From contig OZ038378.1 of NCBI GenBank assembly GCA_964036045.1, forward strand, positions 179,180,001-179,244,000: a stretch of 64,000 nucleotides of DNA, written 5' to 3'. The first letter of the stretch is position 1. Every line of letters starts with the position of its first letter. Source of the DNA: Eutreptiella sp. 'Long Island Sound 2002' (taxonomy: Eukaryota; Protista; Euglenida). Positions 665 through 40,170 of the stretch are shown here, in pieces. The notes under the pieces were generated by a model. The model did no database searches, was not told where the DNA came from, and worked only from the letters and a program-made list of their open reading frames with translations. A program made the translations under genes and the position numbers.

Positions 665-1087
665 TTAGGGCGGGAAAGAAATTGTTTCCTGAAGGGGACT
701 CAGCCCATTTCCTGAATGCCCCCACCCCCTTCCTTGGCGGCCGTGCTGGAACGACAGGGCCCGGGCAGGGTGGTTCGAGAGTAGGGCGGGGGTGTACCGC
801 GACACATGAGTTAACATGATCCCCGAGGCCCGCGCGCTCATTACTTCGAGGTATGCAAAAATTTCTGCTTGGGCCTCCTGGGGGCCCAACTTCCCCCAGT
901 CCTCAAACAGGCTGGCGCGGAGGCCCATTCCCCCGACCCCCCCTTTCTTTTCCGGGCCTCCGTGCCCTCCCCCTGGTCGCCTCGTGTCGAAGGAATAATC
1001 GTCGATAAAGACATTAGAAATACAGATGTAGATCTCACGGACCACGGACCAGGGATCAACGACAGGCTGCAAGAGGCCCGCTGCCAA
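665..1087 (-). other. Unassigned coding-like ORF fragment
   Basis: 140-codon GC-rich frame (…SLFEDWGKLGPQEAQAEIFAYLEVMSARA…) with no recognised motif; it lies in a region of decayed element-like sequence. Confidence 0.2.
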
Positions 1088-3672
1088 GTGGCATCACGAG
1101 CTGCCACTGACAAACAGCAACGAGCAGGTGGGACAGCCCTGGGCTTCCATCATTGATTTGCTTTCTGTTGGTTGAGCGACCTCCGGCTGGGACAATACGC
1201 CAACCTGGTGTGTTTCTGCTTAGTCCTGCGAGCACGGAATTGGTCCAAAGGCGGGGCTGCGCATAGCAACAGACCCGTCCCGAGACAGGGACTGTCCAGG
1301 CTTTTGGTGACGACCCTGGGCGGAATTCTGACACTTCACTGGGCGCAAAAATCGATGACCGTTGATTGGATCCCTGCAACAAAATGTCTCAGTACGTTCC
1401 TCATCACACCAATCCTGTCCAATCGGCCAATTTTAGAGTGTAGCCGAGAAATTGCCGATGCTCGAACCAATGCAAAAATTTTACCAGCCGTGACAGACGG
1501 ATAACAGATGTTGCCAGTCGAAGTCCCTATCCTGCACCTGTGTTGCCGACCGACAACGGGAGGGATGAAACCACATCACCTACTGGCCCTCCTGAGCAGC
1601 ACGACACCACCACTTATTTTAGGCTATGCGATGCGCGCATCGCATGGTGCGAAAGGCTCATGTACTCGTACGGGTTCTGGGTGTCTGCCATCAAGCTGCA
1701 GTTTTGCTGGATTTCTGGTGCCCCCCCCCCCCCCCAAAGTCCAAAGAGAGCGCTTATCCTCTGCGGCACGCCTATACGGGCTTCCTCCACAGAAAGGGTC
1801 CTCCATATTCTGCAGTATACAATCCTCTCTCCTTTGTGCTGCAGGCAAAACCCTCCCCCTTGGGGTCTTTTGGGGTTTTGTTTTTAGAAATTCTGCAGTG
1901 GTTGCTTTTTTGCGTGCCCTTTTTTGGGTAGTGGGCAAGGTGAAGCTTGGCAAAGTGCAAACGTGCGCACGCTACCGAACGTGACCGTCAAACACACTGT
2001 CATCATGTGACACGAATTAGCTCAACGATTTATGACACCCATGGGCTGTTGTTGTGCCATAGCTTTTGTGACGCTCCTTTCATGGATTCTCCATACTCAT
2101 ACGACAAGAAAACTGAGGTGGAGTTTCCCCTTAGTGGCAACGTCAGCTGCAAGACCAGGACGCTGCGCAACATTCACTGGAGCCCCACCCCAGCTCAAGC
2201 TGCAGAGGCCATCATATGGTTCTGCCCAAGGTGCACTCTGCGAGGGCAAATGCTCACATTGCCGAGTGCAATGACATTACGAGAAAGGCTGGTGGGCATG
2301 CGAAACCGGGAGACACCACCACTCCATGAGGGCTAGTGGCGAGGGACACTCCGAGGGAGCATCTCCTGGGTGCATTGGAAAGACCGCCAATCGAATTTCC
2401 TCTTTTGCAGACACTCTGCCAAACAAGTGGTAAAACAGATCCTGCGGCGCGGACGTGCACATCTTCAAAAGCCAGCGAGCGTCAGATAAGGCACCGGGGC
2501 AACCAGTTTCCTCTAGGGCCAAAATGGTGAAATGGCTGCAATTGGAAAACCAGTTGAAGCAAAGAATGTGGCATGTGTGCCAAGACACCGGACGAAGTGA
2601 GAATGCACTTACTGAAAACTATTCCGCGTTTGGTTGTCTATCTGTCTAACGGTCTGCACAAAAAGCGCAGGCCGTTGGTTCTCTCTTCTCCGTCTGTATG
2701 AAGTCCTGAACTGAAGTTCCAGCAGCTTATCAGTGGCACCATATATGCGCGCAGTGACACTTTTGCTTTTCCCTCACGGGCGAGAGCGCTGCAGCGGGCT
2801 GCAGACGGGTGAAGGGATGGTTGTGGATGGTTGACTAGGACAATCTTGAGGGTGTAGAGGGGAGAAGAGGGATGTAGATGACTACACAGTAGAGTGAATG
2901 AAAGGATCGTAGATGTAGAGGGCGGTGGAGGGCACTGGGAACAAAATCAGGCTCAAGAAAAAGAGTCCTGACAGGGCCATGGCCAACGCTAGTGCCACCA
3001 TTATAGGCCACCAAGGCACTGGTATGGGGCCAATATAATAGCAATCTTATACGCTCCGCCGTTGGTACACCAAACGGGCGGAGGAAAATACAGCCCACAA
3101 AACATGCACCCGCTACAAGTAGTTGCAAAATGCTGGAGGGGTGCGTTGTCCAGGGTTGCAGAACACTGCAGAGTGTAGATTGAGGGTCGCAGAGGTTCGA
3201 TAAAAGTTGAAGTGCGACAGCGAGAGCAATATTTTGTTCATTTGGAATCCGCCAACTACTTCAAATGCGGGAGTTTACTCGCTCAAGTCTGCACTTTTGC
3301 GTTGAGATGGTGCACCCTGCCAGTCGCACTGCGACGGTCGGTTGCTGTGAAAATCACCCATGCGCACGCCGCACGGAGCCGTGAAGTTGCAGAGGCGGCA
3401 CCTGCTCTTCCTCGTGGGAGCCTGAGAGCATTCAGCAAAAGACTGCCTTGCCACACCCCTCCAACAGACACAACACGTGCAATCCAAATCGGATACCAGG
3501 CCTTGGAACAGGTGGGCTGTTGGCCCAGTCAACCCAGAGCAGGTGACGCACCGAATGATTGTTTAGCACAAATGGCCCGGCGACAGCCCGGTCGACCGGT
3601 GACCCACAGTTCTGAAGGGCTGTCCTGGACCCGACAAGAAGAAAGGGGAACACTTCCGAAGCGTGCATCACG

Positions 3673-30800: not shown

Positions 30801-31208
30801 TGGCATAAGTTTCCCCTGTGACATGCACTGCAATATTCATCGACCCCAGGCCAGGGCTATTACTCATCCGCGATCCCCCACATCCGATGTGTGACTCTGT
30901 ATTTCGGGATGTGTGAATTGTGTGACAAGTAGGATCCACCCATGATCATAACCCTGACCCCATCTTTCCTCAGTTGATCGCGTGTCATTGACACGTGATC
31001 AATCAGATTATCTGCGTTTTTTGCCTGCTGACCCTGTATTTGGCTGCACCTGTGCTGCAACTTTTGGGTGGGCACGCGCCATCTGCCAAAAAAAGCAGGC
31101 CAATATTTTCCTCCTGAGAGAGCCCCCAACAGGAGCTGAGAGGGGGCGCGCTGTGCGCTGTGCGAAAAGTTGGCTGTTTTCCGCCACCCGTAGCCACGGG
31201 TCCCAGGG

Positions 31209-31232
31209 CAGACATGTGGTTACAGCCGTGCG
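31209..31232 (+). repeat. Left TIR of the hAT element
   Basis: CAGACATGTGGTTACAGCCGTGCG, exact reverse complement of 35387-35410. Confidence 0.95.
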
Positions 31233-31803
31233 CAAGGGTGGGGCTTTGCTGTGCGCAACTGTGCGTCCTCTTCAAATGTAGCCGTGCGCAACCGTGCGCT
31301 GCCTTGTAATCTAGCCGTGCGCAACCGTGCGACCAATTTTTGACCAAAAATTTTGACCGGAAAGCCCCTTAAGTGCCGGCCGCGTCCGATGATGGTGTTT
31401 ATTGGTACAACACCGGAGGGGTGGGGGTACCTCGTCGTCTTCTCCTTCTTTGCCAACAAAAGCTGCTGCACAAAACGAACCAAGAAGCAGACCCAACGGC
31501 CTTTAGGGCCCTCACTGCGGAGAGGCAAGCATGCAGCACCAGGTGGATATATTTCAACAGCAACCATGGTATGAAAAGATGGGTATTTGGCGCTACTGTG
31601 GGTTGTGGAAGTTGAAAGTTGCCTGGGCCACTGGGTAGTGTGGTATGCTTGCCAGAAAGGAGTAGACACTCAGACCTTTGGCTGAGGCATGTCGCCACAT
31701 GTCGGTCAGCAAGTGATTCTTTTCAAGGATGCAGGCCGATCCCATCCCTTGGAGCAACACCTCTTTTTCCTCTTTGGCCACTCAGACTACCTTTTTACGC
31801 GAC

Positions 31804-34800
31804 ATGTTGGCGAAGTGGGTGAAGAAGGCGCAGATTCCACTCCCGAGCGACAGCACCAGCAGCAGCAACGACCTCCGTGTTGCTGAGCAAAGTGTAGCGC
31901 AAGAGCCCAACCCACCATCCCCTTCCACACCGTTACAGGCGGGCAAAGGCAAGACCAGCAGGGAAAAGAAGAGGAAGGACGCGGAGAGTTCATCGCCATC
32001 GCCAAAGAAGTCAACAAGATCAAGTTCACTGCAGGTACCTTTCTTTGTGCTATTTTTCCATGCCTGTGGGGCAGAGTTGTCTTTAGCGGTGGTCACAATC
32101 ACAGTCACTATCACAGTCACAGTCACAGTCACTATCACAGTCACTATCACAGTCACAGTCACAGACACAGTCATTATCATAAGTCACAGTCACAGTCACA
32201 CTCACAGTCACAGTCACAGTCACAGTCACTATCACAGTCACATTTGGGCAGAATTTGTTGTTGCTTTCTGTGTGCCACTTTTCTGTTTGTGTGTTTGTAG
32301 AGGACACCGAAGTCCCGCAAGTCCACACCGGATGCGTGTACCGTGGCATCGCCGAAGCGTGCATTCCGGAAGGAGTGGCAGATCGGGCGCAATTGGTTAC
32401 TATTCTCAGTGGACGATGGGATGTGGTGTCTCCTCTGTTATAAGTATCGTCACGATTCCCGAGTGGTACGCTTTGGCCGACATACCAATCCTCTGGTGTA
32501 TGCTACAAAAAATTATCGGGTGGAGATTGTGGTTGCACATGCGGAGACATCCTATCACCTTCGTGCTGTTCATTTGGAGTCCATGAAGACTGCAGCAACA
32601 GTGCAGGCTGTGGCTGTTCGACTGCCGCCCACAATCGTTCCACAAGTGAAGGTTATTTTCCGTACAATTTATAGTATGGCGCAGCGCGGCATCAGTTGGT
32701 CTCAATTGCGTGCGGAATTGGAGCTGCAGACAGCCAATGGGGTGATATATCACTTGAGGTATTTGTGTGGTGCTGCTGAGCCCTGTTTGCCCTGTTTGCC
32801 CTGTTTGATGTGGTACAGAATATCCAGAGGGTGAAATGGGTAGGGTTGTTGCATAGCTATAGAGGCAGGAACACATGGTGTGCCATATCAGCCAAAAAAA
32901 AAATCACACAGCTCGTTCTATGCGACGAAAAAATGGCATATGTAGAACGAAGGTCATTGGCTGAGCGGTTAAAGGCATGGGTGATAAAGCTGTCAATTTG
33001 ACAGAGATGGGTTCAATTCCCACTGCATGCATTCTATGTCCTGTTGTGCTGGGGGCACTGAGCACTCTACCCTGCTGTCATGTCTTTTTCATGTCATTGT
33101 TGTGCTTCCGTTCAGGTACAAGGAGCGCTACTACGTACCGTTGGTGTTGTGCTTTTTGGCTGCGGAGTGCCGGCGCTGGTTGTCGAGGAAGTTGAGCATG
33201 GCAACATCACGGTCGTTCATGGCCGATGAAGTACGAGTGGCTGGTGAGGATTGGCTGACAATATGTGCACGATGGTTTGGGCCACAAGAATTCAGGGAAA
33301 GTCCAATTGGAGTTTTGCAACTGGGAGAAGACCGCGATGCTGCTGCCTTGGTTGCTGGATTTGTTTCCATTATGCAGGGATTGGGCTGCAATGACAAGGT
33401 GTGGATGAGTTCTTCAACAATTTCGTGCACTTTTGATGGTGCGAAGGTTCTACTTTCAGCAGTATCCCGGTCATTGAGAGAGCGGGTGTTACCAAAGGAC
33501 GAGGAAGAGGAAGAGCAGAAGGAGAGTGCCCAAGAGGAAAGGCCTTTGGCAGGCATGTATACACTTTATTGCTGCAGCCATCGCACACAACGTGTGGATG
33601 CAGATGCAACCAAGAACTCTCCCATTGTGCGGAAGTTGCACTCCTTGCTGAAGAACACTGCGAATTTCTTTGGCCGTTCAACCAAAAGATGGCATGGAAT
33701 GCGCCGTGTGGCCCGTTGTATGGGTTATGCCACAGAACTGGGGGCAAAGAAAGCAGTGCTGTGCAGGTACACAAAGTTGCAGAAGACAAGGTTTGTGGTT
33801 TGGAAGGCCAAAGCCATCAAGCGTTGGTTGAAGAATATTTTTGCCCTACTGCCATACCTGGAGGGGTCAAAGTTCAAAGACAGGAAGACTCGTCGCAAAG
33901 CTTCTGGACTTCTTCGCCGTGCGCAAAAGGCTCAGTATGTGTATGCCCTGCATCATTATTTCCACTACTGTGCTGCACTCCAACACTTGTCGCTCAGCAC
34001 GCAGGGGTATCAAGCTGTGTTACCAACGTTGCGACATTCTCTGGTCACATGCCACCATATGTTGGACGCTGCGCGCACAAACACGTTCCGTCAAAAATGG
34101 GATCCTTCAACTGGGAAATATCATACAGTTAAACTGATGGGCACGTTGGAGGAGCTGGACCACGTGGACAATTGGTACACCAGGCTACTGGGCTATACAC
34201 GGCAAGCCTTGAAGGATCGGTTTCCTGAGGATGAAATAGTAACCGCAGCCAGCCTTTTTGACCGCCGAACATGGCCAAAGGAGCCCAAGGACCTGTCAAA
34301 AGATGACCGTCTCCCTGCATTGCAAAAGCTGAGCAGTACATTTCCTGCAATCAAACAGTTTTCGGAGAAGCAGTTTGTGTCAGCGGCTTGTGCAGTGGCA
34401 GCAATGGTACCACCTCTGGTTTCTTCAAGGGGCCGCATACGAGCACATGATTGCACGCATTGTTGGGCAATTGCGAGTCAAGCATCCTGGGCAACGTCAC
34501 ACCTCCCTGTTGTGCGGGCTGCCACCGTGCTTTGCACTATTGCCCAGTCCCAAAGTTCCACCGAACGTATGAATAGTATGTTGAAGCTAGCTGCGGGTGG
34601 TCGGCGGTGGCGTTTGACCGGACAAGGGTTAGCGGATGAAGTGCTTATTCGTACAGTGGGTCCAAGTCTGCCGGATGCAGAGGATTTGATACATCGGGCT
34701 GTGGTGCAGTGGTCTATCGCTGCGGAACGTCGTCCTCAAAGCTATGAAGACTCATCAGAAAGTGATTCTGATGAAATGGGTACCTCGGATTCCGATACTT

Positions 34801-35156
34801 CGTTTGCTACGGGCTCAAGTATCTCAAGTGGGGAAGAGGGAAGCATGTCAAGCCGTTCAGCAGCTTCAGCTGATGACGATGAAGAGCCTTTGCCGCAACC
34901 TGAACCAGCTGAACCACAACAACCCGAACAAGCCGAAGAAGATGTGCAACAAGACGCTCCACAAGATGCTGCACCAGATTTCTTGTCATGGCTCTCTAAG
35001 TACCGCCCCCAATTGGCTGCTTATGAGATCCGCCTGCGGCGCGATGGTTGGGACACAGTTCAATCGTTGAAGCTATTGACAGTGGAGGACATGGCGCAAT
35101 TGAATATTCTACCAGGACATCGCCGCTTATTGGTGGACACGGTGAAGGACTTGTAG
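31804..35156 (+). CDS. hAT (ZNF862/Tip100-like) transposase with N-terminal TTF-type zinc finger and C-terminal SAM domain, about 909 aa
   Basis: Exons 31804-32034, 32301-32758, 33116-35156 (GT-AG, phases 0 and 2 match; 2730 nt). Zinc finger WLLFSVDDGMWCLLC...HAETSYH. Catalytic motifs SFMADE (D1), CTFDGAKV (D2), YCCSHRT (CxxH), KTRF (TRW position), SQSSTERMNSML (E). SAM-like end DFLSWLSKYRPQLAAYEIRLRRDGWDTVQSLKLLTVEDMAQLNILPGHRRLLVDTVKDL. Confidence 0.9.
32095..32240. repeat. (CACAGT)n hexamer microsatellite in transposase intron 1
   Basis: More than 20 imperfect CACAGT/CACTAT units. Confidence 0.9.
32952..33030 (+). ncRNA. tRNA-like sequence (probable tRNA-derived SINE head or pseudo-tRNA, long variable arm) in transposase intron 2
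   Basis: A-box-like TGGCTGAGCGGTTAAAGGC, variable-arm hairpin CTGTCA-ATT-TGACAG, B-box-like GGGTTCAATTCCC. Acceptor and anticodon stems do not pair well. Confidence 0.4.
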
Positions 35157-35386
35157 CTCATGGTGCTTGGCCTGGTGGGGCGCCAACATTTTTTGGTTGG
35201 CCCAGAATTGACTGGGGGGTCTTTTGCACTGCACAGTGCCCTTAAACACAAATTCCACCAGCACCACTTTTTGGTATGTACTTTTTCTTGAAGTGCCGCT
35301 CAACCGTGCGCAAGCGTGCGCCACGTTCAGATCTCGCTGTGCGCAACCGTGCATATCCGGAAAAAGTAGCCGTGCGCAACCGTACA

Positions 35387-35410
35387 CGCACGGCTGTAAC
35401 CACATGTCTG
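35387..35410 (-). repeat. Right TIR of the hAT element
   Basis: CGCACGGCTGTAACCACATGTCTG, exact reverse complement of 31209-31232. Confidence 0.95.
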
Positions 35411-36516
35411 GTCCCAGGGTCCTGAATTCTGCACCCTACAGCCCCTGCTGGTATTAGTCTGATGCTTGCCACGGGTCCCAGGGTCCTGAATTCTGCACCC
35501 CATGCTGTTTTGAATTGATCATGCATGCTTCTGTAGGTGGGTGGTTTTCAAGGGTGTTCCCGGGATAAACAACATAATACTTGGCGCTATGCCTGCGCTG
35601 TGCAAAAACGCCCCCATAGTTTGCAGGATCGGGGCAGCAAAGCAAGTGGTATGGGGACATCTCACGTGGAGGTCATTCATAACCACAGGCATGTGATTCT
35701 GATTCAGCCGCAATCACCCCAAGACCATCCTGCATCTTATGTGATTCAACCACATCTAACAATGTTCCAGTATCAGAGTTGCCACGTACATCTGTGCGTG
35801 TACAACGGTGGGTGGAAATGTACATATGATCGGGGACAGCACAATATCTTTGCATTGATGTTGGCGCCAGATATCGGCCCTGAAATGGCTGTACATTGCG
35901 CTTGCTTCCTGGTGTGTCCCACAATCCTTTGCCCAAGCACAGGCCTGTCCAATGAAGGAACTGGGCGCTCTGTTCTGTGCGCACACCGTGCAGAGTTTTC
36001 GGATGGTGACCTCAGCAAACCCATTGCACGCCCACGGGCACAGTGTTCGACTAACTTATGGTGTCACATCACAGATCCCAACCCCTGGCTGCCTCTGCAT
36101 GACGTTTGCCATCCAGCCTGCCCTTCCTAGTGCATAGGGACTTTTTCTTGTTTTCTCATTGTACACTTACCACCGCGTCAGCTTCCTTGTTACTACCCTG
36201 CTTCCAAGAGTTCGAGCAACATCTATGCCCCACTCCTGGTTTTGCTTGACGTTCCCACATGCTTGGGATCTCCTTCTGGTGTGTGAATGTTGGAGCGGTG
36301 CCCTGTGAGGCCGTTTGTGTGAATGTTGGAGCAGTGCCCTGTGAGGCCGTTTTGTCAGACAATAAACCAAACTGCTTTACGTCATCCCGTCGTTTGTGCT
36401 GTTGTGGTGCAGGGAGGTTGCGGTGCCATCTGTTACAATGGTGTGGGGGAGAAAGATGGCTATTTTTCAGAGATGGGGCCGTGGTCTGCCAGGTCAGGCA
36501 ACCCCAGGTGTGGTTG

Positions 36517-37094
36517 CCCCCCCCCCCCCCGTGTCCAACAAACACTGTGTCCAACGAACACTTCCGTTCGGACCGTATTTTTTGAGGACCTAATTAATTA
36601 GGTACTTAATTAGGTACCGGGCTCCAGAACCGCGGTTTCAGGCTAAAGGTTTGGGGAAATGAGGGGCTGTTGTGATGTATTTTGCAGTAATGGTGGGCAA
36701 ATTTGTAAAGCAGGTTGTGAGGGAATGGTGTCCCTCAACTACGGGACCTCTATTGCCCACCATGACTGATTCTCTGCTTGCACCTGGCCAGGAGGTGCTA
36801 TACAAGCAGTACCACCACTTCTGCCCATGCCAAGGACAAGAAGGGCCCTAAGCCTGGGGAGCATATTCAACTTTTCCACATGAAGCGGGACCACAACAAG
36901 GGCTTCTACTCTGAAAAGTGCTAATTGGAGGCCTCCATTGGATTGTGATTTGAATGGGCTGGGTAACTTGTGCCTAGGGATGTGTTACCGCCGTTTCACA
37001 ATATTGTTGTGCGCACCGAACGGTGTGTCCAACGAACACTCCTGTTCGGACCTTGTTTTTTCAGGACAAAATTGTTCGTTGGACACAAGGGGGG
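36517..37094. mobile_element. MITE-like element with (C)nGTGTCCAAC / GTTGGACAC..(G)n termini
   Basis: Left (C)nGTGTCCAACAAACACTGTGTCCAACGAACAC; right GTGTCCAACGAACAC...TTGTTCGTTGGACACAA(G)6; internal palindrome CCTAATTAATTAGG near 36590. Confidence 0.6.
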
Positions 37095-37096
37095 TA

Positions 37097-37606
37097 CCCC
37101 CCCCCCCCTGTCGTTCCCCACCCCTTGTCGTTCCCCGGGGGGGGGGTGGGGGACCGTCACTTGGTCAACCCAAAATTTTTCGTTGCGGCTCATTGTGTTG
37201 TTGTGTGGGTGACTGTGTTGTGGGGCACTACCACTTGCATCCCTTGCACTCATGGCAGGACATTTTGCTCACTTTCGCTGAAATGGAACTTGATAGCACA
37301 ACCATGTTTCCCCCTGGGACAAGTGGTGAGCATGTGGAAGAGTTCAAGGTCAAGTGGAGCAGGACCAAGAAATTTTATACCGAGCCGGTCAAGGAGTAGG
37401 TCTCCGTACATTGGCAACCCTTTGAACGCATCCTATGCTGAATTCTTTCGTTTTATGCTGCAATTTTTGTGCCTGCAAATGTGCATGTACGGTGGGGGTG
37501 TGGTCCCCCATGGGGGGGTGGGGGACCGTCACTTGGTGACCATCCCCCAGGGGGTGGTGGGGGACCGTCTTCCCTGGGGTGGGGAACGACAAGGGGGGGG
37601 GGGGGG
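37097..37606. mobile_element. MITE with poly-C/poly-G-tipped TIR and TA duplication
   Basis: TA|(C)nTGTCGTTCCCCACCCC ... GGGGTGGGGAACGACAA(G)n|TA, with GGGGACCGTCACTTGGT subterminal repeats at both ends. Confidence 0.8.
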
Positions 37607-37879
37607 TACCTATTTCTGGAAAATTATTGGTGTCAGAAAAATGGCTACTACCGACCGTGGCAGCATTGTAAGGGTCTTTTGAAGTATTGCAATAATTATG
37701 CAGAATAGTGCAGAATGCAGAATATCAAAGGACTATGCAATGAAAAGCAGTCTCCAGCAGGAGAAGCTTGAGCAAGAAGGAGGGAGGGTTCAAATCAGAC
37801 CAATCCCCAGGACCCAAGGCATCTGTGGATTGTCGCCATGCCTCAACCGTTGTGATAGGCAAAACTGGAGTCCGTTGCG

Positions 37880-39187
37880 CCCGTCTGTCCGTTGCGGCTG
37901 TGCATGCCTTGTGCCTGTCCCTGCGTCGCGCCTGCCCGTCTGTCGCGCCCGTCTGTCCCTCGCGGCCGTCCGTCCGTCGTGCCTGTCCGCCCGTTGTGCC
38001 CGTCCGTCCGTCGCCGCTGTCTGTCCGTCGCGGCCGTCGCGCCCGTCTGTCTGTCATTCCTGTCCGTCCATCGCACCCATCTGTCCGTTGTGGCCATCTG
38101 TCCGTTGCGCCCGTTCATCCGTCGTGGCCGTCGATCCCGTCCGGCCATTGTGCACATCCGTCCGTCGCACCCGTCTATCCGCCGCGCCTGTCCCTGCATT
38201 GTGCCCGTCTGTCCGTTGCGGCTGTGCATGCCTTGTGCCTGTCCCTGCGTCGCGCCTGCCCGTCTGTCGCGCCCGTCTGTCCCTCGCGGCCGTCCGTCCG
38301 TCGTGCCTGTCCGCCCGTTGTGCCCGTCCGTCCGTCGCCGCTGTCTGTCCGTCGCGGCCGTCGCGCCCGTCTGTCTGTCATTCCTGTCCGTCCATCGCAC
38401 CCATCTGTCCGTTGTGGCCATCTGTCCGTTGCGCCCGTTCATCCGTCGTGGCCGTCGATCCCGTCCGGCCATTGTGCACATCCGTCCGTCGCACCCGTCT
38501 ATCCGCCGCGCCTGTCCCTGCATTGTGCCCGTCTGTCCGTTGCGGCTGTGCATGCCTTGTGCCTGTCCCTGCGTCGCGCCTGCCCGTCTGTCGCGCCCGT
38601 CTGTCCCTCGCGGCCGTCCGTCCGTCGTGCCTGTCCGCCCGTTGTGCCCGTCCGTCCGTCGCCGCTGTCTGTCCGTCGCGGCCGTCGCGCCCGTCTGTCT
38701 GTCATTCCTGTCCGTCCATCGCACCCATCTGTCCGTTGTGGCCATCTGTCCGTTGCGCCCGTTCATCCGTCGTGGCCGTCGATCCCGTCCGGCCATTGTG
38801 CACATCCGTCCGTCGCACCCGTCTATCCGCCGCGCCTGTCCCTGCATTGTGCCCGTCTGTCCGTTGCGGCTGTGCATGCCTTGTGCCTGTCCCTGCGTCG
38901 CGCCTGCCCGTCTGTCGCGCCCGTCTGTCCCTCGCGGCCGTCCGTCCGTCGTGCCTGTCCGCCCGTTGTGCCCGTCCGTCCGTCGCCGCTGTCTGTCCGT
39001 CGCGGCCGTCGCGCCCGTCTGTCTGTCATTCCTGTCCGTCCATCGCACCCATCTGTCCGTTGTGGCCATCTGTCCGTTGCGCCCGTTCATCCGTCGTGGC
39101 CGTCGATCCCGTCCGGCCATTGTGCACATCCGTCCGTCGCACCCGTCTATCCGCCGCGCCTGTCCCTGCATTGTGCCCGTCTGTCCG
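37880..39187. repeat. Tandem repeat, 4 x 324 bp (apparently identical copies) plus a degenerate tail to about 39400
   Basis: Unit starts CCCGTCTGTCCGTTGCGGCTGTGCATGCC at 37880, 38204, 38528 and 38852, with a partial copy at 39176. It is built from CCGTC/CTGTC submotifs. Identical 68-aa ORFs in the track recur every 324 bp. Confidence 0.95.
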
Positions 39188-40170
39188 TAAGGCCTGTCTG
39201 TTCGACGCGCCCGTGCCCTTGTGTCTGTCGCACCCGTCCGTCTGTCATGTCCGTCTTTTTTTTGCGCCCGTCCATCCGTCGCGCCCCTCCGTCCGCCGCG
39301 GCTGTCTGTCCGTTGCGCCTGTCCATCCATTGCGCTCATCCGTCCGGTGCGCCTGTCTGTATGTCGCGCCCGTCCATCCGTCGCGCCCGTTCATCTGTTG
39401 TGGCAGTCTGTTTGTGGCGCTCATCACACGAGAGAAGTGGAGTTGTGGGGAGGAGAATGTCGTGGGATTGTGATTGTGTATGATTGGTGAGTCGAAAAGT
39501 TGCGGTGGGTGGGGGTACTGCCTCCTCTTCCATTCTCATGAACTGCATCCAGGCTTGACAGGGGAGTTCAGGGTCACTACATGGGTGCCTCACAATACCA
39601 GAAAGCGTGTTGTATTGGCAGTTATGCTCAGGATTTGGGTCCGACATTGAATGAGGAAAAAACGCCGAGCACAGAAAGAGAGGATGGAGGAGCTGGGCAG
39701 GCATGCAAGGCCAGTAGGCAGGATGAGGTGTTTTGGAATGCCCTGAAGCTGCATTGGTGCCTCGTGTCTCTTGCACCTATGGTGTTGGTATTTAGTGATT
39801 GGTGAGTCTGGGCCATGTGCTTTGGGTGCACTCGTCGCCTCTGCTGAGATAAAGAGGTGGCGTAGGTGATGTGTCTGGATGGTGAGGGAAATGTTCAAAA
39901 CTGGAGATGGTGAGCAAGGCCAATCCTGGTCTGGGTAGGGAGATGAACTGGCCAAGAAGGTATTGACTCCCTACAACGCAGTGATGGCAAGGGCGGGCTG
40001 AGGGTTTGGACTCAGAAGTTTGAGCCAAGCACTAAACAGGAAAGGTTCCGCAGCCCAATTGGGCGAACTCAAGGCAACACTTGGCGCTAGGTCAGTATGC
40101 ATTGGTTCTGTGCGGCTGCTGCTGCACCTGCCCTGCAAAGAGCCAGTGTTCTATCCGCTTGGCAGGGAGA

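Follow-up and report, generated by a model that had tools for sequence, protein, structure and literature searches.

The window analyzed here, a stretch of 64,000 nucleotides from the euglenid alga Eutreptiella sp. 'Long Island Sound 2002' (contig OZ038378.1), contains a DNA transposon of the hAT superfamily whose transposase ends in a sterile alpha motif (SAM) domain. The element is almost certainly autonomous, and it encodes a protein built of a putative zinc finger, a Hermes-like DDE core, a linker, and the C-terminal SAM. Sequence comparisons indicate that the SAM tail was already present in the ancestor of a distinct hAT clade and has been kept there by selection. The best overall explanation, and a probable one, is that of a SAM-tailed autonomous hAT in which the SAM is a tethered association module. 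The narrower proposal that this module serves assembly or avidity is advanced tentatively.

The C-terminal part of the protein can be read in a single open reading frame (ORF), 33027-35156 (+), which holds the hAT motif STERMNS, an acidic linker, and the SAM pattern WL..Y..L..LTVEDM..L.ILPGHRRLL in one frame, as the original prediction, made from the sequence alone, had described. Positions 34977-35156 are the final 59 codons and the stop of a three-exon gene. That this C-terminus would score as a SAM domain was borne out by several methods. The Pfam cutoffs are 23 bits for SAM_1 and 20.5 bits for SAM_2. With SAM_1, the whole ORF reaches 23.0 bits, positions 34911-35153 reach 27.3 bits (E 4.9e-6), and positions 34953-35153 reach 28.0 bits; with SAM_2, the isolated tail scores 22-22.8 bits, above its cutoff. 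Among the tails of the family, 18 of 34 match SAM_1 at E up to 0.01, and a profile of all 34 matches the solved SAM domains of SHIP2, Caskin-1/2, ANKS1A/B, SASH1, and Eph proteins (E 2.3e-8 to 1.4e-3). In the AlphaFold model of the exon-3 protein, residues 622-678 form five helices with a predicted local distance difference test (pLDDT) of ~96, the isolated tail is likewise modeled as five helices (pLDDT 85), and the linker (residues 549-616) falls below 50. The Foldseek matches listed for the tail are almost exclusively SAM domains, the best with a template modeling (TM) score of 0.65-0.76 and a root-mean-square deviation of 1.6-2.5 A over 57-59 residues; the small size of the domain keeps the E-values weak. 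Conservation is strongest at the Gly turn, in the acidic E-D-M patch, and in the basic G-H-R-R stretch that opens helix 5, and the latter two patches may correspond to the usual mid-loop and end-helix contact surfaces of SAM domains.

The element belongs to the hAT superfamily, as had been proposed. This placement follows from matches to Hermes in fold and profile, from 8-bp target-site duplications (TSDs), which are exact in all six of the other copies compared, from terminal inverted repeats (TIRs) of the CAG type, and from subterminal repeats. Because neither Pfam nor a profile of three family members gave a hAT match, the link needed a deep profile and a structure model: Pfam matched no transposase family on the whole exon-3 protein, and the three-member profile retrieved SAM entries only, and no Hermes, from the PDB. 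The AlphaFold2 model of the exon-3 protein, built on a 149-sequence alignment, has a pLDDT of 88 overall and above 90 over residues 10-540. At E <=0.001, Foldseek matched it to 12 PDB chains, all of them Hermes (best E 1.7e-11, TM score up to 0.65 on the Hermes side). Used as a profile, the same alignment matched Hermes at E 1.7e-14, with the second D (FDGA), the CxxH (CCSH), and the catalytic E (STERMNS) aligned. FDGAKV, CCSHRT, and STERMNS of the window protein are invariant in the family alignment, and the first catalytic D would be that of MADEV, judged only from its position in strand 1. An exhaustive profile search found 226 relatives, and the more distant full-length ones bear Dimer_Tnp_hAT, zf-C17orf113, and DUF4371/DUF659. 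Exon 2 gives 21.2-21.5 bits with zf-C17orf113 (PF25431) against a cutoff of 29.5, compared with 38-49 bits in outgroup hAT relatives. Additionally, searches of protein clusters gave either sub-threshold matches to FAM200/ZBED5/DUF4371/hAT clusters or no match at all.

The original prediction saw the SAM as captured cargo, and this needs correction if a recent capture is meant. The tail is an old, constrained, and integral part of these transposases, because it is present across the clade, it occurs in an element from another organism, and its dN/dS (the ratio of nonsynonymous to synonymous substitution rates) is low. A SAM is joined to the hAT C-terminus in the relatives P0004, P0006/P0155, P0009, P0017, P0028, P0035, and P0038. 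For instance, P0004 (908 aa) and P0006/P0155 (862 and 878 aa), which come from other organisms, are 33-38% identical to the window protein and carry an alignable SAM tail at the end. P0005 is a truncated gene call whose SAM exon lies downstream on its contig, L014. Similarly, the metagenome contig L016 is a complete 3.86-kb element with an intronless, SAM-tailed gene of 878 aa, 30-nt TIRs with a CAGAG start (CAGAGTTT...), and subterminal repeats of GTGCGGACC; its right flank is a poly-G run, and its TSD is unreadable. Its protein is at best 36-52% identical to anything in the genome of the window, and thus it derives from another organism. In a tree of 41 long sequences made with a quick method, every SAM-tailed row belongs to a single clade of 10 sequences on a long stem, with a Shimodaira-Hasegawa-like approximate likelihood ratio test (SH-aLRT) support of 100. 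The three rows of this clade that lack a SAM are C-terminally truncated predictions, so that every member with a known C-terminus carries the tail. The family SAM profile had no match in any of the 31 outgroup hAT rows of the tree, and Pfam SAM models had none in the 10 outgroup hAT relatives scanned.

Within the genome of the window, the SAM profile has at least 150 matches among 532 candidates. All 16 of the long-frame matches that were sampled sit behind hAT C-terminal sequence, and they represent at least six diverged subfamilies. When the window copy was compared with diverged subfamily copies of the same genome, dN/dS over the SAM was estimable in five of seven comparisons and came to 0.07-0.17, with one decayed copy at 0.49; dS was high and partly saturated. 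The transposase C-terminus gave similar values (0.06-0.12), and the linker, at 0.14-0.24, was the least constrained part. The expectation that other genomic copies would retain the SAM under purifying selection is thus supported. Short SAM frames were seen as well: three identical copies have a 96-aa SAM-only frame (C1:195845693-195845899, C20:20859156-20859362, and C24:33102092-33102298) and presumably lie in deletion derivatives, and a cluster of 77-aa SAM frames is found between 186.0 and 187.2 Mb of C1.

The element is an autonomous transposon that has moved recently and has Ds-like derivatives, in line with the earlier description of an intact and still-mobile transposon. Its two TIRs lie outside the ORF, as had been noted, and are 100% complementary over 24 nt, and these ends delimit all genomic copies. 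Recent mobility follows from a second full-length copy at 99.6% identity and from deletion copies at 99.8-100% identity with 8-bp TSDs. The former, L002 (C5:28239329-28243530), is the sole other full-length copy in the genome. The latter number at least six, all of which share these ends and are flanked by exact 8-bp duplications. Short end-only copies are numerous and more diverged. In genomic contigs the element ends are ~300x deeper than the interior, which implies many short derivatives. A motif of the CCGTGCGCAA type has 20 matches in the window compared with 5.6 expected; seven of these are grouped within ~120 bp of the element ends, mostly 33 bp apart, and Tandem Repeats Finder (TRF) reports a 33-bp period in the left array. 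A paralogous target site that lacks the insertion is present at ~35468-35500, ~60 bp downstream of the element. A domesticated host gene was considered and rejected, given the TIRs, the TSDs, and the multiple near-identical copies and deletion derivatives.

Several details of individual copies and of the insertion site were also recorded. The flanks of the window copy match over 9 bases (GTCCCAGGG), compared with the exact 8-bp duplications of six other copies; either the TSD is one of 8 bp next to a G that matches by chance or was added, or the cut was staggered by an atypical 9 bp. L002 differs from the window element at 14 positions and by two single-base indels in intron 2, its left TIR lacks the terminal CA, and its flanks contain no matching TSD. 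The sequence that received the insertion is an extremely abundant repeat (window 35466-35600 and 31154-31208), with a summed contig depth of ~214,000 compared with ~191 for the element interior (run X3). Contigs that join 31198 to 35410 are numerous, and these represent uninterrupted copies of the host repeat or empty sites.

The transposase gene has three exons, the boundaries of which were read from the sequence, and the exons were searched separately against databases (Table 1). The predicted length of 909 aa is correct for translation from the second ATG (31804), whereas from the first ATG (31729) the protein has 934 aa. Exon 2 is colinear with P0004, P0005, and P0006, and these intronless relatives are colinear over both exon junctions; P0004 and P0005 cross the exon 2/3 junction without a gap. 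The support for that junction is this colinearity with P0004, P0005, and P0006, because a paralogous copy, L041, lacks the junction residues. L041 (322-2763; C14:38274121-38276562) belongs to a subfamily that is 65-69% identical and has a single 814-aa frame from zinc finger to SAM; it was dropped as an intronless confirmation, as it has neither intron 2 nor the 22 residues around the junction. Intron 1 holds a (GTCACA)25 microsatellite at 32092-32242 (TRF), at which the contigs of all runs break.

Transcription was assessed from two estuary metatranscriptomes, which yielded eight short contigs at >=99% identity, on exons 1 and 3. Those of exon 1 lie at 31701-32024, and two others (34621-35010 and 35022-35169) run colinearly across the linker, the SAM, and the stop. 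No RNA contig lies on the introns or on exon 2. There is thus no sign that the message ends or is spliced before the SAM, one of the outcomes that had been raised against the fusion, and the contigs lend weak support to a message that includes the SAM. L013 and L017 end in what looks like genomic sequence rather than a spliced-leader cap. Exon-1 variants in one metatranscriptome (31754 A and 31904 T) match the L002 copy.

Table 1. Features of the SAM-tailed hAT element and its transposase gene (window positions).
Feature	Position	Strand	Description
Autonomous hAT element	31209-35410		4,202 bp; three-exon transposase gene inside
Left TSD	31200..31208		GTCCCAGG plus one further matching G; same 9 bases at 35411-35419
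Left TIR	31209..31232	+	24 nt, CAGAC start (CAGACATGTGG...)
Left subterminal repeats	31226..31331	+	four CCGTGCGCAA-type motifs, the last three at 33-bp spacing
Exon 1	31729..32034	+	Ser/Lys-rich N-terminal region with KKRK-type basic patch; alternative ATG 31804; GT donor
Intron 1	32035..32300	+	GT..AG; contains (GTCACA)25 microsatellite; frame restored across junction
Exon 2	32301..32758	+	putative zinc-finger DNA-binding region, zf-C17orf113 type
Intron 2	32759..33115	+	GT..AG; frame kept
Exon 3, part 1	33116..34737	+	hAT catalytic core, helical insertion domain, C-terminal hAT region; motifs DE, DGA, CCSH, STERMNS
Exon 3, part 2	34738..34976	+	acidic Ser/Asp/Glu/Pro-rich linker, predicted disordered, ~80 aa
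Exon 3, part 3	34977..35153	+	SAM domain, predicted five-helix bundle
Stop codon TAG	35154..35156	+	crossed by RNA-library contig 35022-35169
Right subterminal repeats	35304..35379	+	three CCGTGCGCAA-type motifs at 33-bp spacing
Right TIR	35387..35410	-	24 nt
Right TSD	35411..35419		from the sequence and comparison with other copies

Other repeats were noted in the window. At 37875-39188, a 324-bp unit is repeated 4.1 times at 99% identity; this satellite is itself built of degenerate 17-nt GTCCGTCGCGCCCGTCC units, and on either strand it gives rise to long ORFs in several frames, all of them spurious. Window 36504-37619 contains inverted repeats tipped with poly-C/poly-G (for example, 37097-37124 and 37576-37603, 96% complementary) together with repeated TGTGTCCAACGAACAC units, and these look like other small foldback or miniature inverted-repeat transposable elements (MITE-like) next to the hAT.

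A second SAM-tailed transposon appears to be present in the same genome. L043:472-3477 (C1, ~3,900,471-3,903,476) is flanked by TA and has TIRs of ~47 nt (CAGGGGGGGGGG...). Its ORF (699-2831, minus strand, 711 aa) continues through a low-complexity linker rich in Ser/Ala/Asp into a C-terminal SAM_1 domain scoring 32.6-37.6 bits. The protein matches DDE_3 weakly, at 12 bits only, and a phmmer search of the PDB did not identify the DDE part. Its SAM is only 27-29% identical to that of the hAT element. Two or more unrelated superfamilies of DNA transposons in this alga, represented by the hAT clade and by the TA-flanked, candidate Tc1/mariner/pogo-like element, could have gained SAM tails as a convergent adaptation, by which their transposases would plug either into a SAM scaffold of the host or into SAM polymers of their own making; this is a speculative and rather unlikely generalization.

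The original prediction held that the SAM could tune transpososome assembly, tether the transposase to host proteins, or bind RNA, and each of these is weighed here. Placed on a flexible tether, the SAM would supply an extra protein-protein association module. Through SAM-SAM contacts, whether head-to-tail or with further SAM proteins, transposase dimers would be joined into higher-order assemblies, and at each end of the element such an assembly would bind the array of three to four subterminal repeats spaced 33 bp apart. The features behind this proposal are the subterminal arrays at both ends, the predicted disordered linker, the conservation of the acidic and basic SAM patches, and the fact that the closest solved SAMs are of protein-protein types. 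According to PMC10368747, the Hermes octamer recognizes the left end through the BED domains of several dimers, and this multivalent end recognition offers an analogy for SAM-linked assemblies.

Several observations weigh against this interpretation, either in its mechanism or in the evidence beneath it. Self-association of the SAM is hypothetical. Hermes reaches higher-order assembly without a SAM, and by this comparison the SAM may serve something else. The unrelated second transposon is explained by a host-specific partner no less readily than by generic self-assembly. RNA support is thin, in that the eight contigs include no splice joints, and carry-over of DNA is a possible source of such contigs. 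Finally, Dimer_Tnp_hAT (PF05699) had no match on the window protein at E up to 1, so that of the domain matches that had been expected, SAM_1/SAM_2 were found and Dimer_Tnp_hAT was not. P0004 reaches 12.4 bits with this family, for which the cutoff is 21.4, and outgroup relatives reach 22-33 bits. The missed match probably reflects divergence rather than absence, because the outgroups do match and the profile could align this region with Hermes.

The main rival to an assembly module is a host tether, which gains weight from the second SAM-tailed, TA-flanked element. Here the tail would bind a SAM protein of the host, such as a chromatin or scaffold factor, and thereby determine nuclear localization or target choice. 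Chromodomains direct some integrases of long terminal repeat (LTR) retrotransposons in a similar manner. Two unrelated transposons in one genome, the TA-flanked one with a Pfam-significant SAM after a low-complexity linker, carry SAMs that are only ~27-29% identical, and such convergent gain in one host would point to a partner on the host side. Moreover, the closest solved SAMs form heterotypic pairs (SHIP2-EphA2, Caskin-EphA6, and ANKS1-EphA6). However, no candidate host partner was identified, the 8-base target duplications of seven copies have no obvious common pattern, and the clade occurs in at least one other organism, so that the partner would need to be conserved. Overall, a host tether is a doubtful explanation, if one to be taken seriously.

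Self-limitation and RNA binding are less supported than either an assembly module or a host tether. Under self-limitation, SAM polymerization would sequester excess transposase (overproduction inhibition), and truncated, SAM-bearing products of the many internal-deletion copies would poison active complexes and so dampen transposition. All deletion derivatives seen retain the 3' part, including the SAM; several have long frames that end in the SAM (268-707 aa, and also P0002, P0003, and P0010), and the three identical copies noted above have a frame for the SAM only. Nevertheless, internal deletions of a hAT necessarily keep both ends, and retention of 3' coding sequence is expected anyway. 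Expression of the truncated frames is hypothetical, and purifying selection across subfamilies fits a role in spread better than a brake. Self-limitation is thus improbable. RNA binding, by which a SAM of the Smaug/Vts1 type would hold an RNA hairpin, for instance in the element's own transcript, is less probable still. Some SAM domains are known to bind RNA, but in both sequence and fold the tail matches SAMs of the protein-protein kind exclusively (SHIP2, Eph, Caskin, ANKS1, SASH1, and p73), and neither Smaug nor Vts1 is found among the PDB sequence matches at E up to 0.01 or the Foldseek matches listed.

A non-functional fusion, that is, a chance resemblance to SAM or a pseudo-exon read only in the genomic ORF, is scarcely credible: the full-ORF Pfam score lies exactly at its cutoff (23.0 bits) and the RNA contigs show no splice joints, but the domain scores exceed the cutoff, the profile reaches E 2e-8 to solved SAMs, the five-helix model is confident, the clade conserves the tail at a dN/dS of 0.07-0.17, and the frame is uninterrupted in intronless relatives, such that chance similarity was rejected on the conservation of the SAM and the selection upon it.

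In comparison to known systems, the distinguishing part of the SAM-tailed element is the conserved C-terminal linker and SAM. Hermes (Musca domestica, hAT; PDB 2BW3, 4D1Q, 8EDG, and 8SJD) has the same fold as the window protein, namely an RNase-H-like DDE core interrupted by an all-helical insertion domain and followed by a hAT-type C-terminal region. The two proteins can be aligned at the D, CxxH, and SxxERxFS-type motifs. The elements are also alike in their short TIRs, 8-bp TSDs, and subterminal repeats, and the N-terminal zinc finger of Hermes has a putative counterpart in the window protein. However, the proteins are only 11-13% identical, and the putative zinc finger of the window protein is of the zf-C17orf113 type, where Hermes has a classical BED. 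Additionally, the window protein extends past the hAT C-terminus by an 80-residue acidic linker, predicted to be disordered, and the SAM, neither of which is covered by the matched Hermes chains. The nearest relatives outside the clade are hATs with zf-C17orf113/DUF4371/DUF659/Dimer_Tnp_hAT domains, including those that are FAM200/ZBED5/GTF2IRD2-like (profile E 1e-12 to 1e-5). These share the hAT C-terminal region and, putatively, the type of N-terminal zinc finger with the window protein, but neither the 10 scanned nor the 31 rows of the tree have a SAM match, several end in acidic tails only, and they are set apart by a long branch with a support of 100. The SAMs of SHIP2/Eph/Caskin/ANKS1 share the G-H-(R/K)-(R/K)-L-L start of helix 5 with the window SAM. 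They belong to signaling and scaffold proteins of animals, whereas the window SAM is the C-terminus of an algal transposase and a putative binding module.

Transposases joined to host-type modules are familiar from SETMAR and from KRAB- or SCAN-transposase fusions, which are immobile, domesticated host genes. In contrast, the fusion described here belongs to a mobile element, which has TIRs and TSDs and exists in near-identical copies. Another parallel is offered by the integrases of chromoviruses, which gained a C-terminal, host-type chromodomain, kept it across the clade, and use it in targeting, a role that is established. Those integrases belong to a different class of element and carry a different domain, and the role of the SAM in the hAT clade is inferred.

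The architecture appears to be previously undescribed, as had been suspected, in the literature and among named database proteins. The 20 clusters of relatives that were looked up all come from ENA or Logan assemblies; none is in NCBI or UniRef, and none is named. Full-text literature searches, with InterPro architectures, Repbase, and Dfam outside their scope, returned no description of a hAT or other transposase with a SAM or sterile alpha motif, and a search on C17orf113 likewise returned nothing relevant. A hAT of another clade that had gained a SAM independently would have escaped the family profile.

The SAM-tailed hATs provide a case of domain accretion inside a mobile DNA transposon, where the well-known cases are host genes that captured transposase domains. 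Higher-order transposase complexes, and the reason that Hermes needs an octamer, are a live question, for which this clade is a natural test system. That another transposon of this genome seems to have a SAM tail as well hints at a selective reason for such tails that is specific to the host. If the tails are convergent, they would be a hitherto unrecognized means by which cut-and-paste transposons control the assembly of the transpososome, targeting, or dosage. Additionally, as a recently active and compact element of 4.2 kb, the transposon is a candidate genetic tool for euglenid-type algae.

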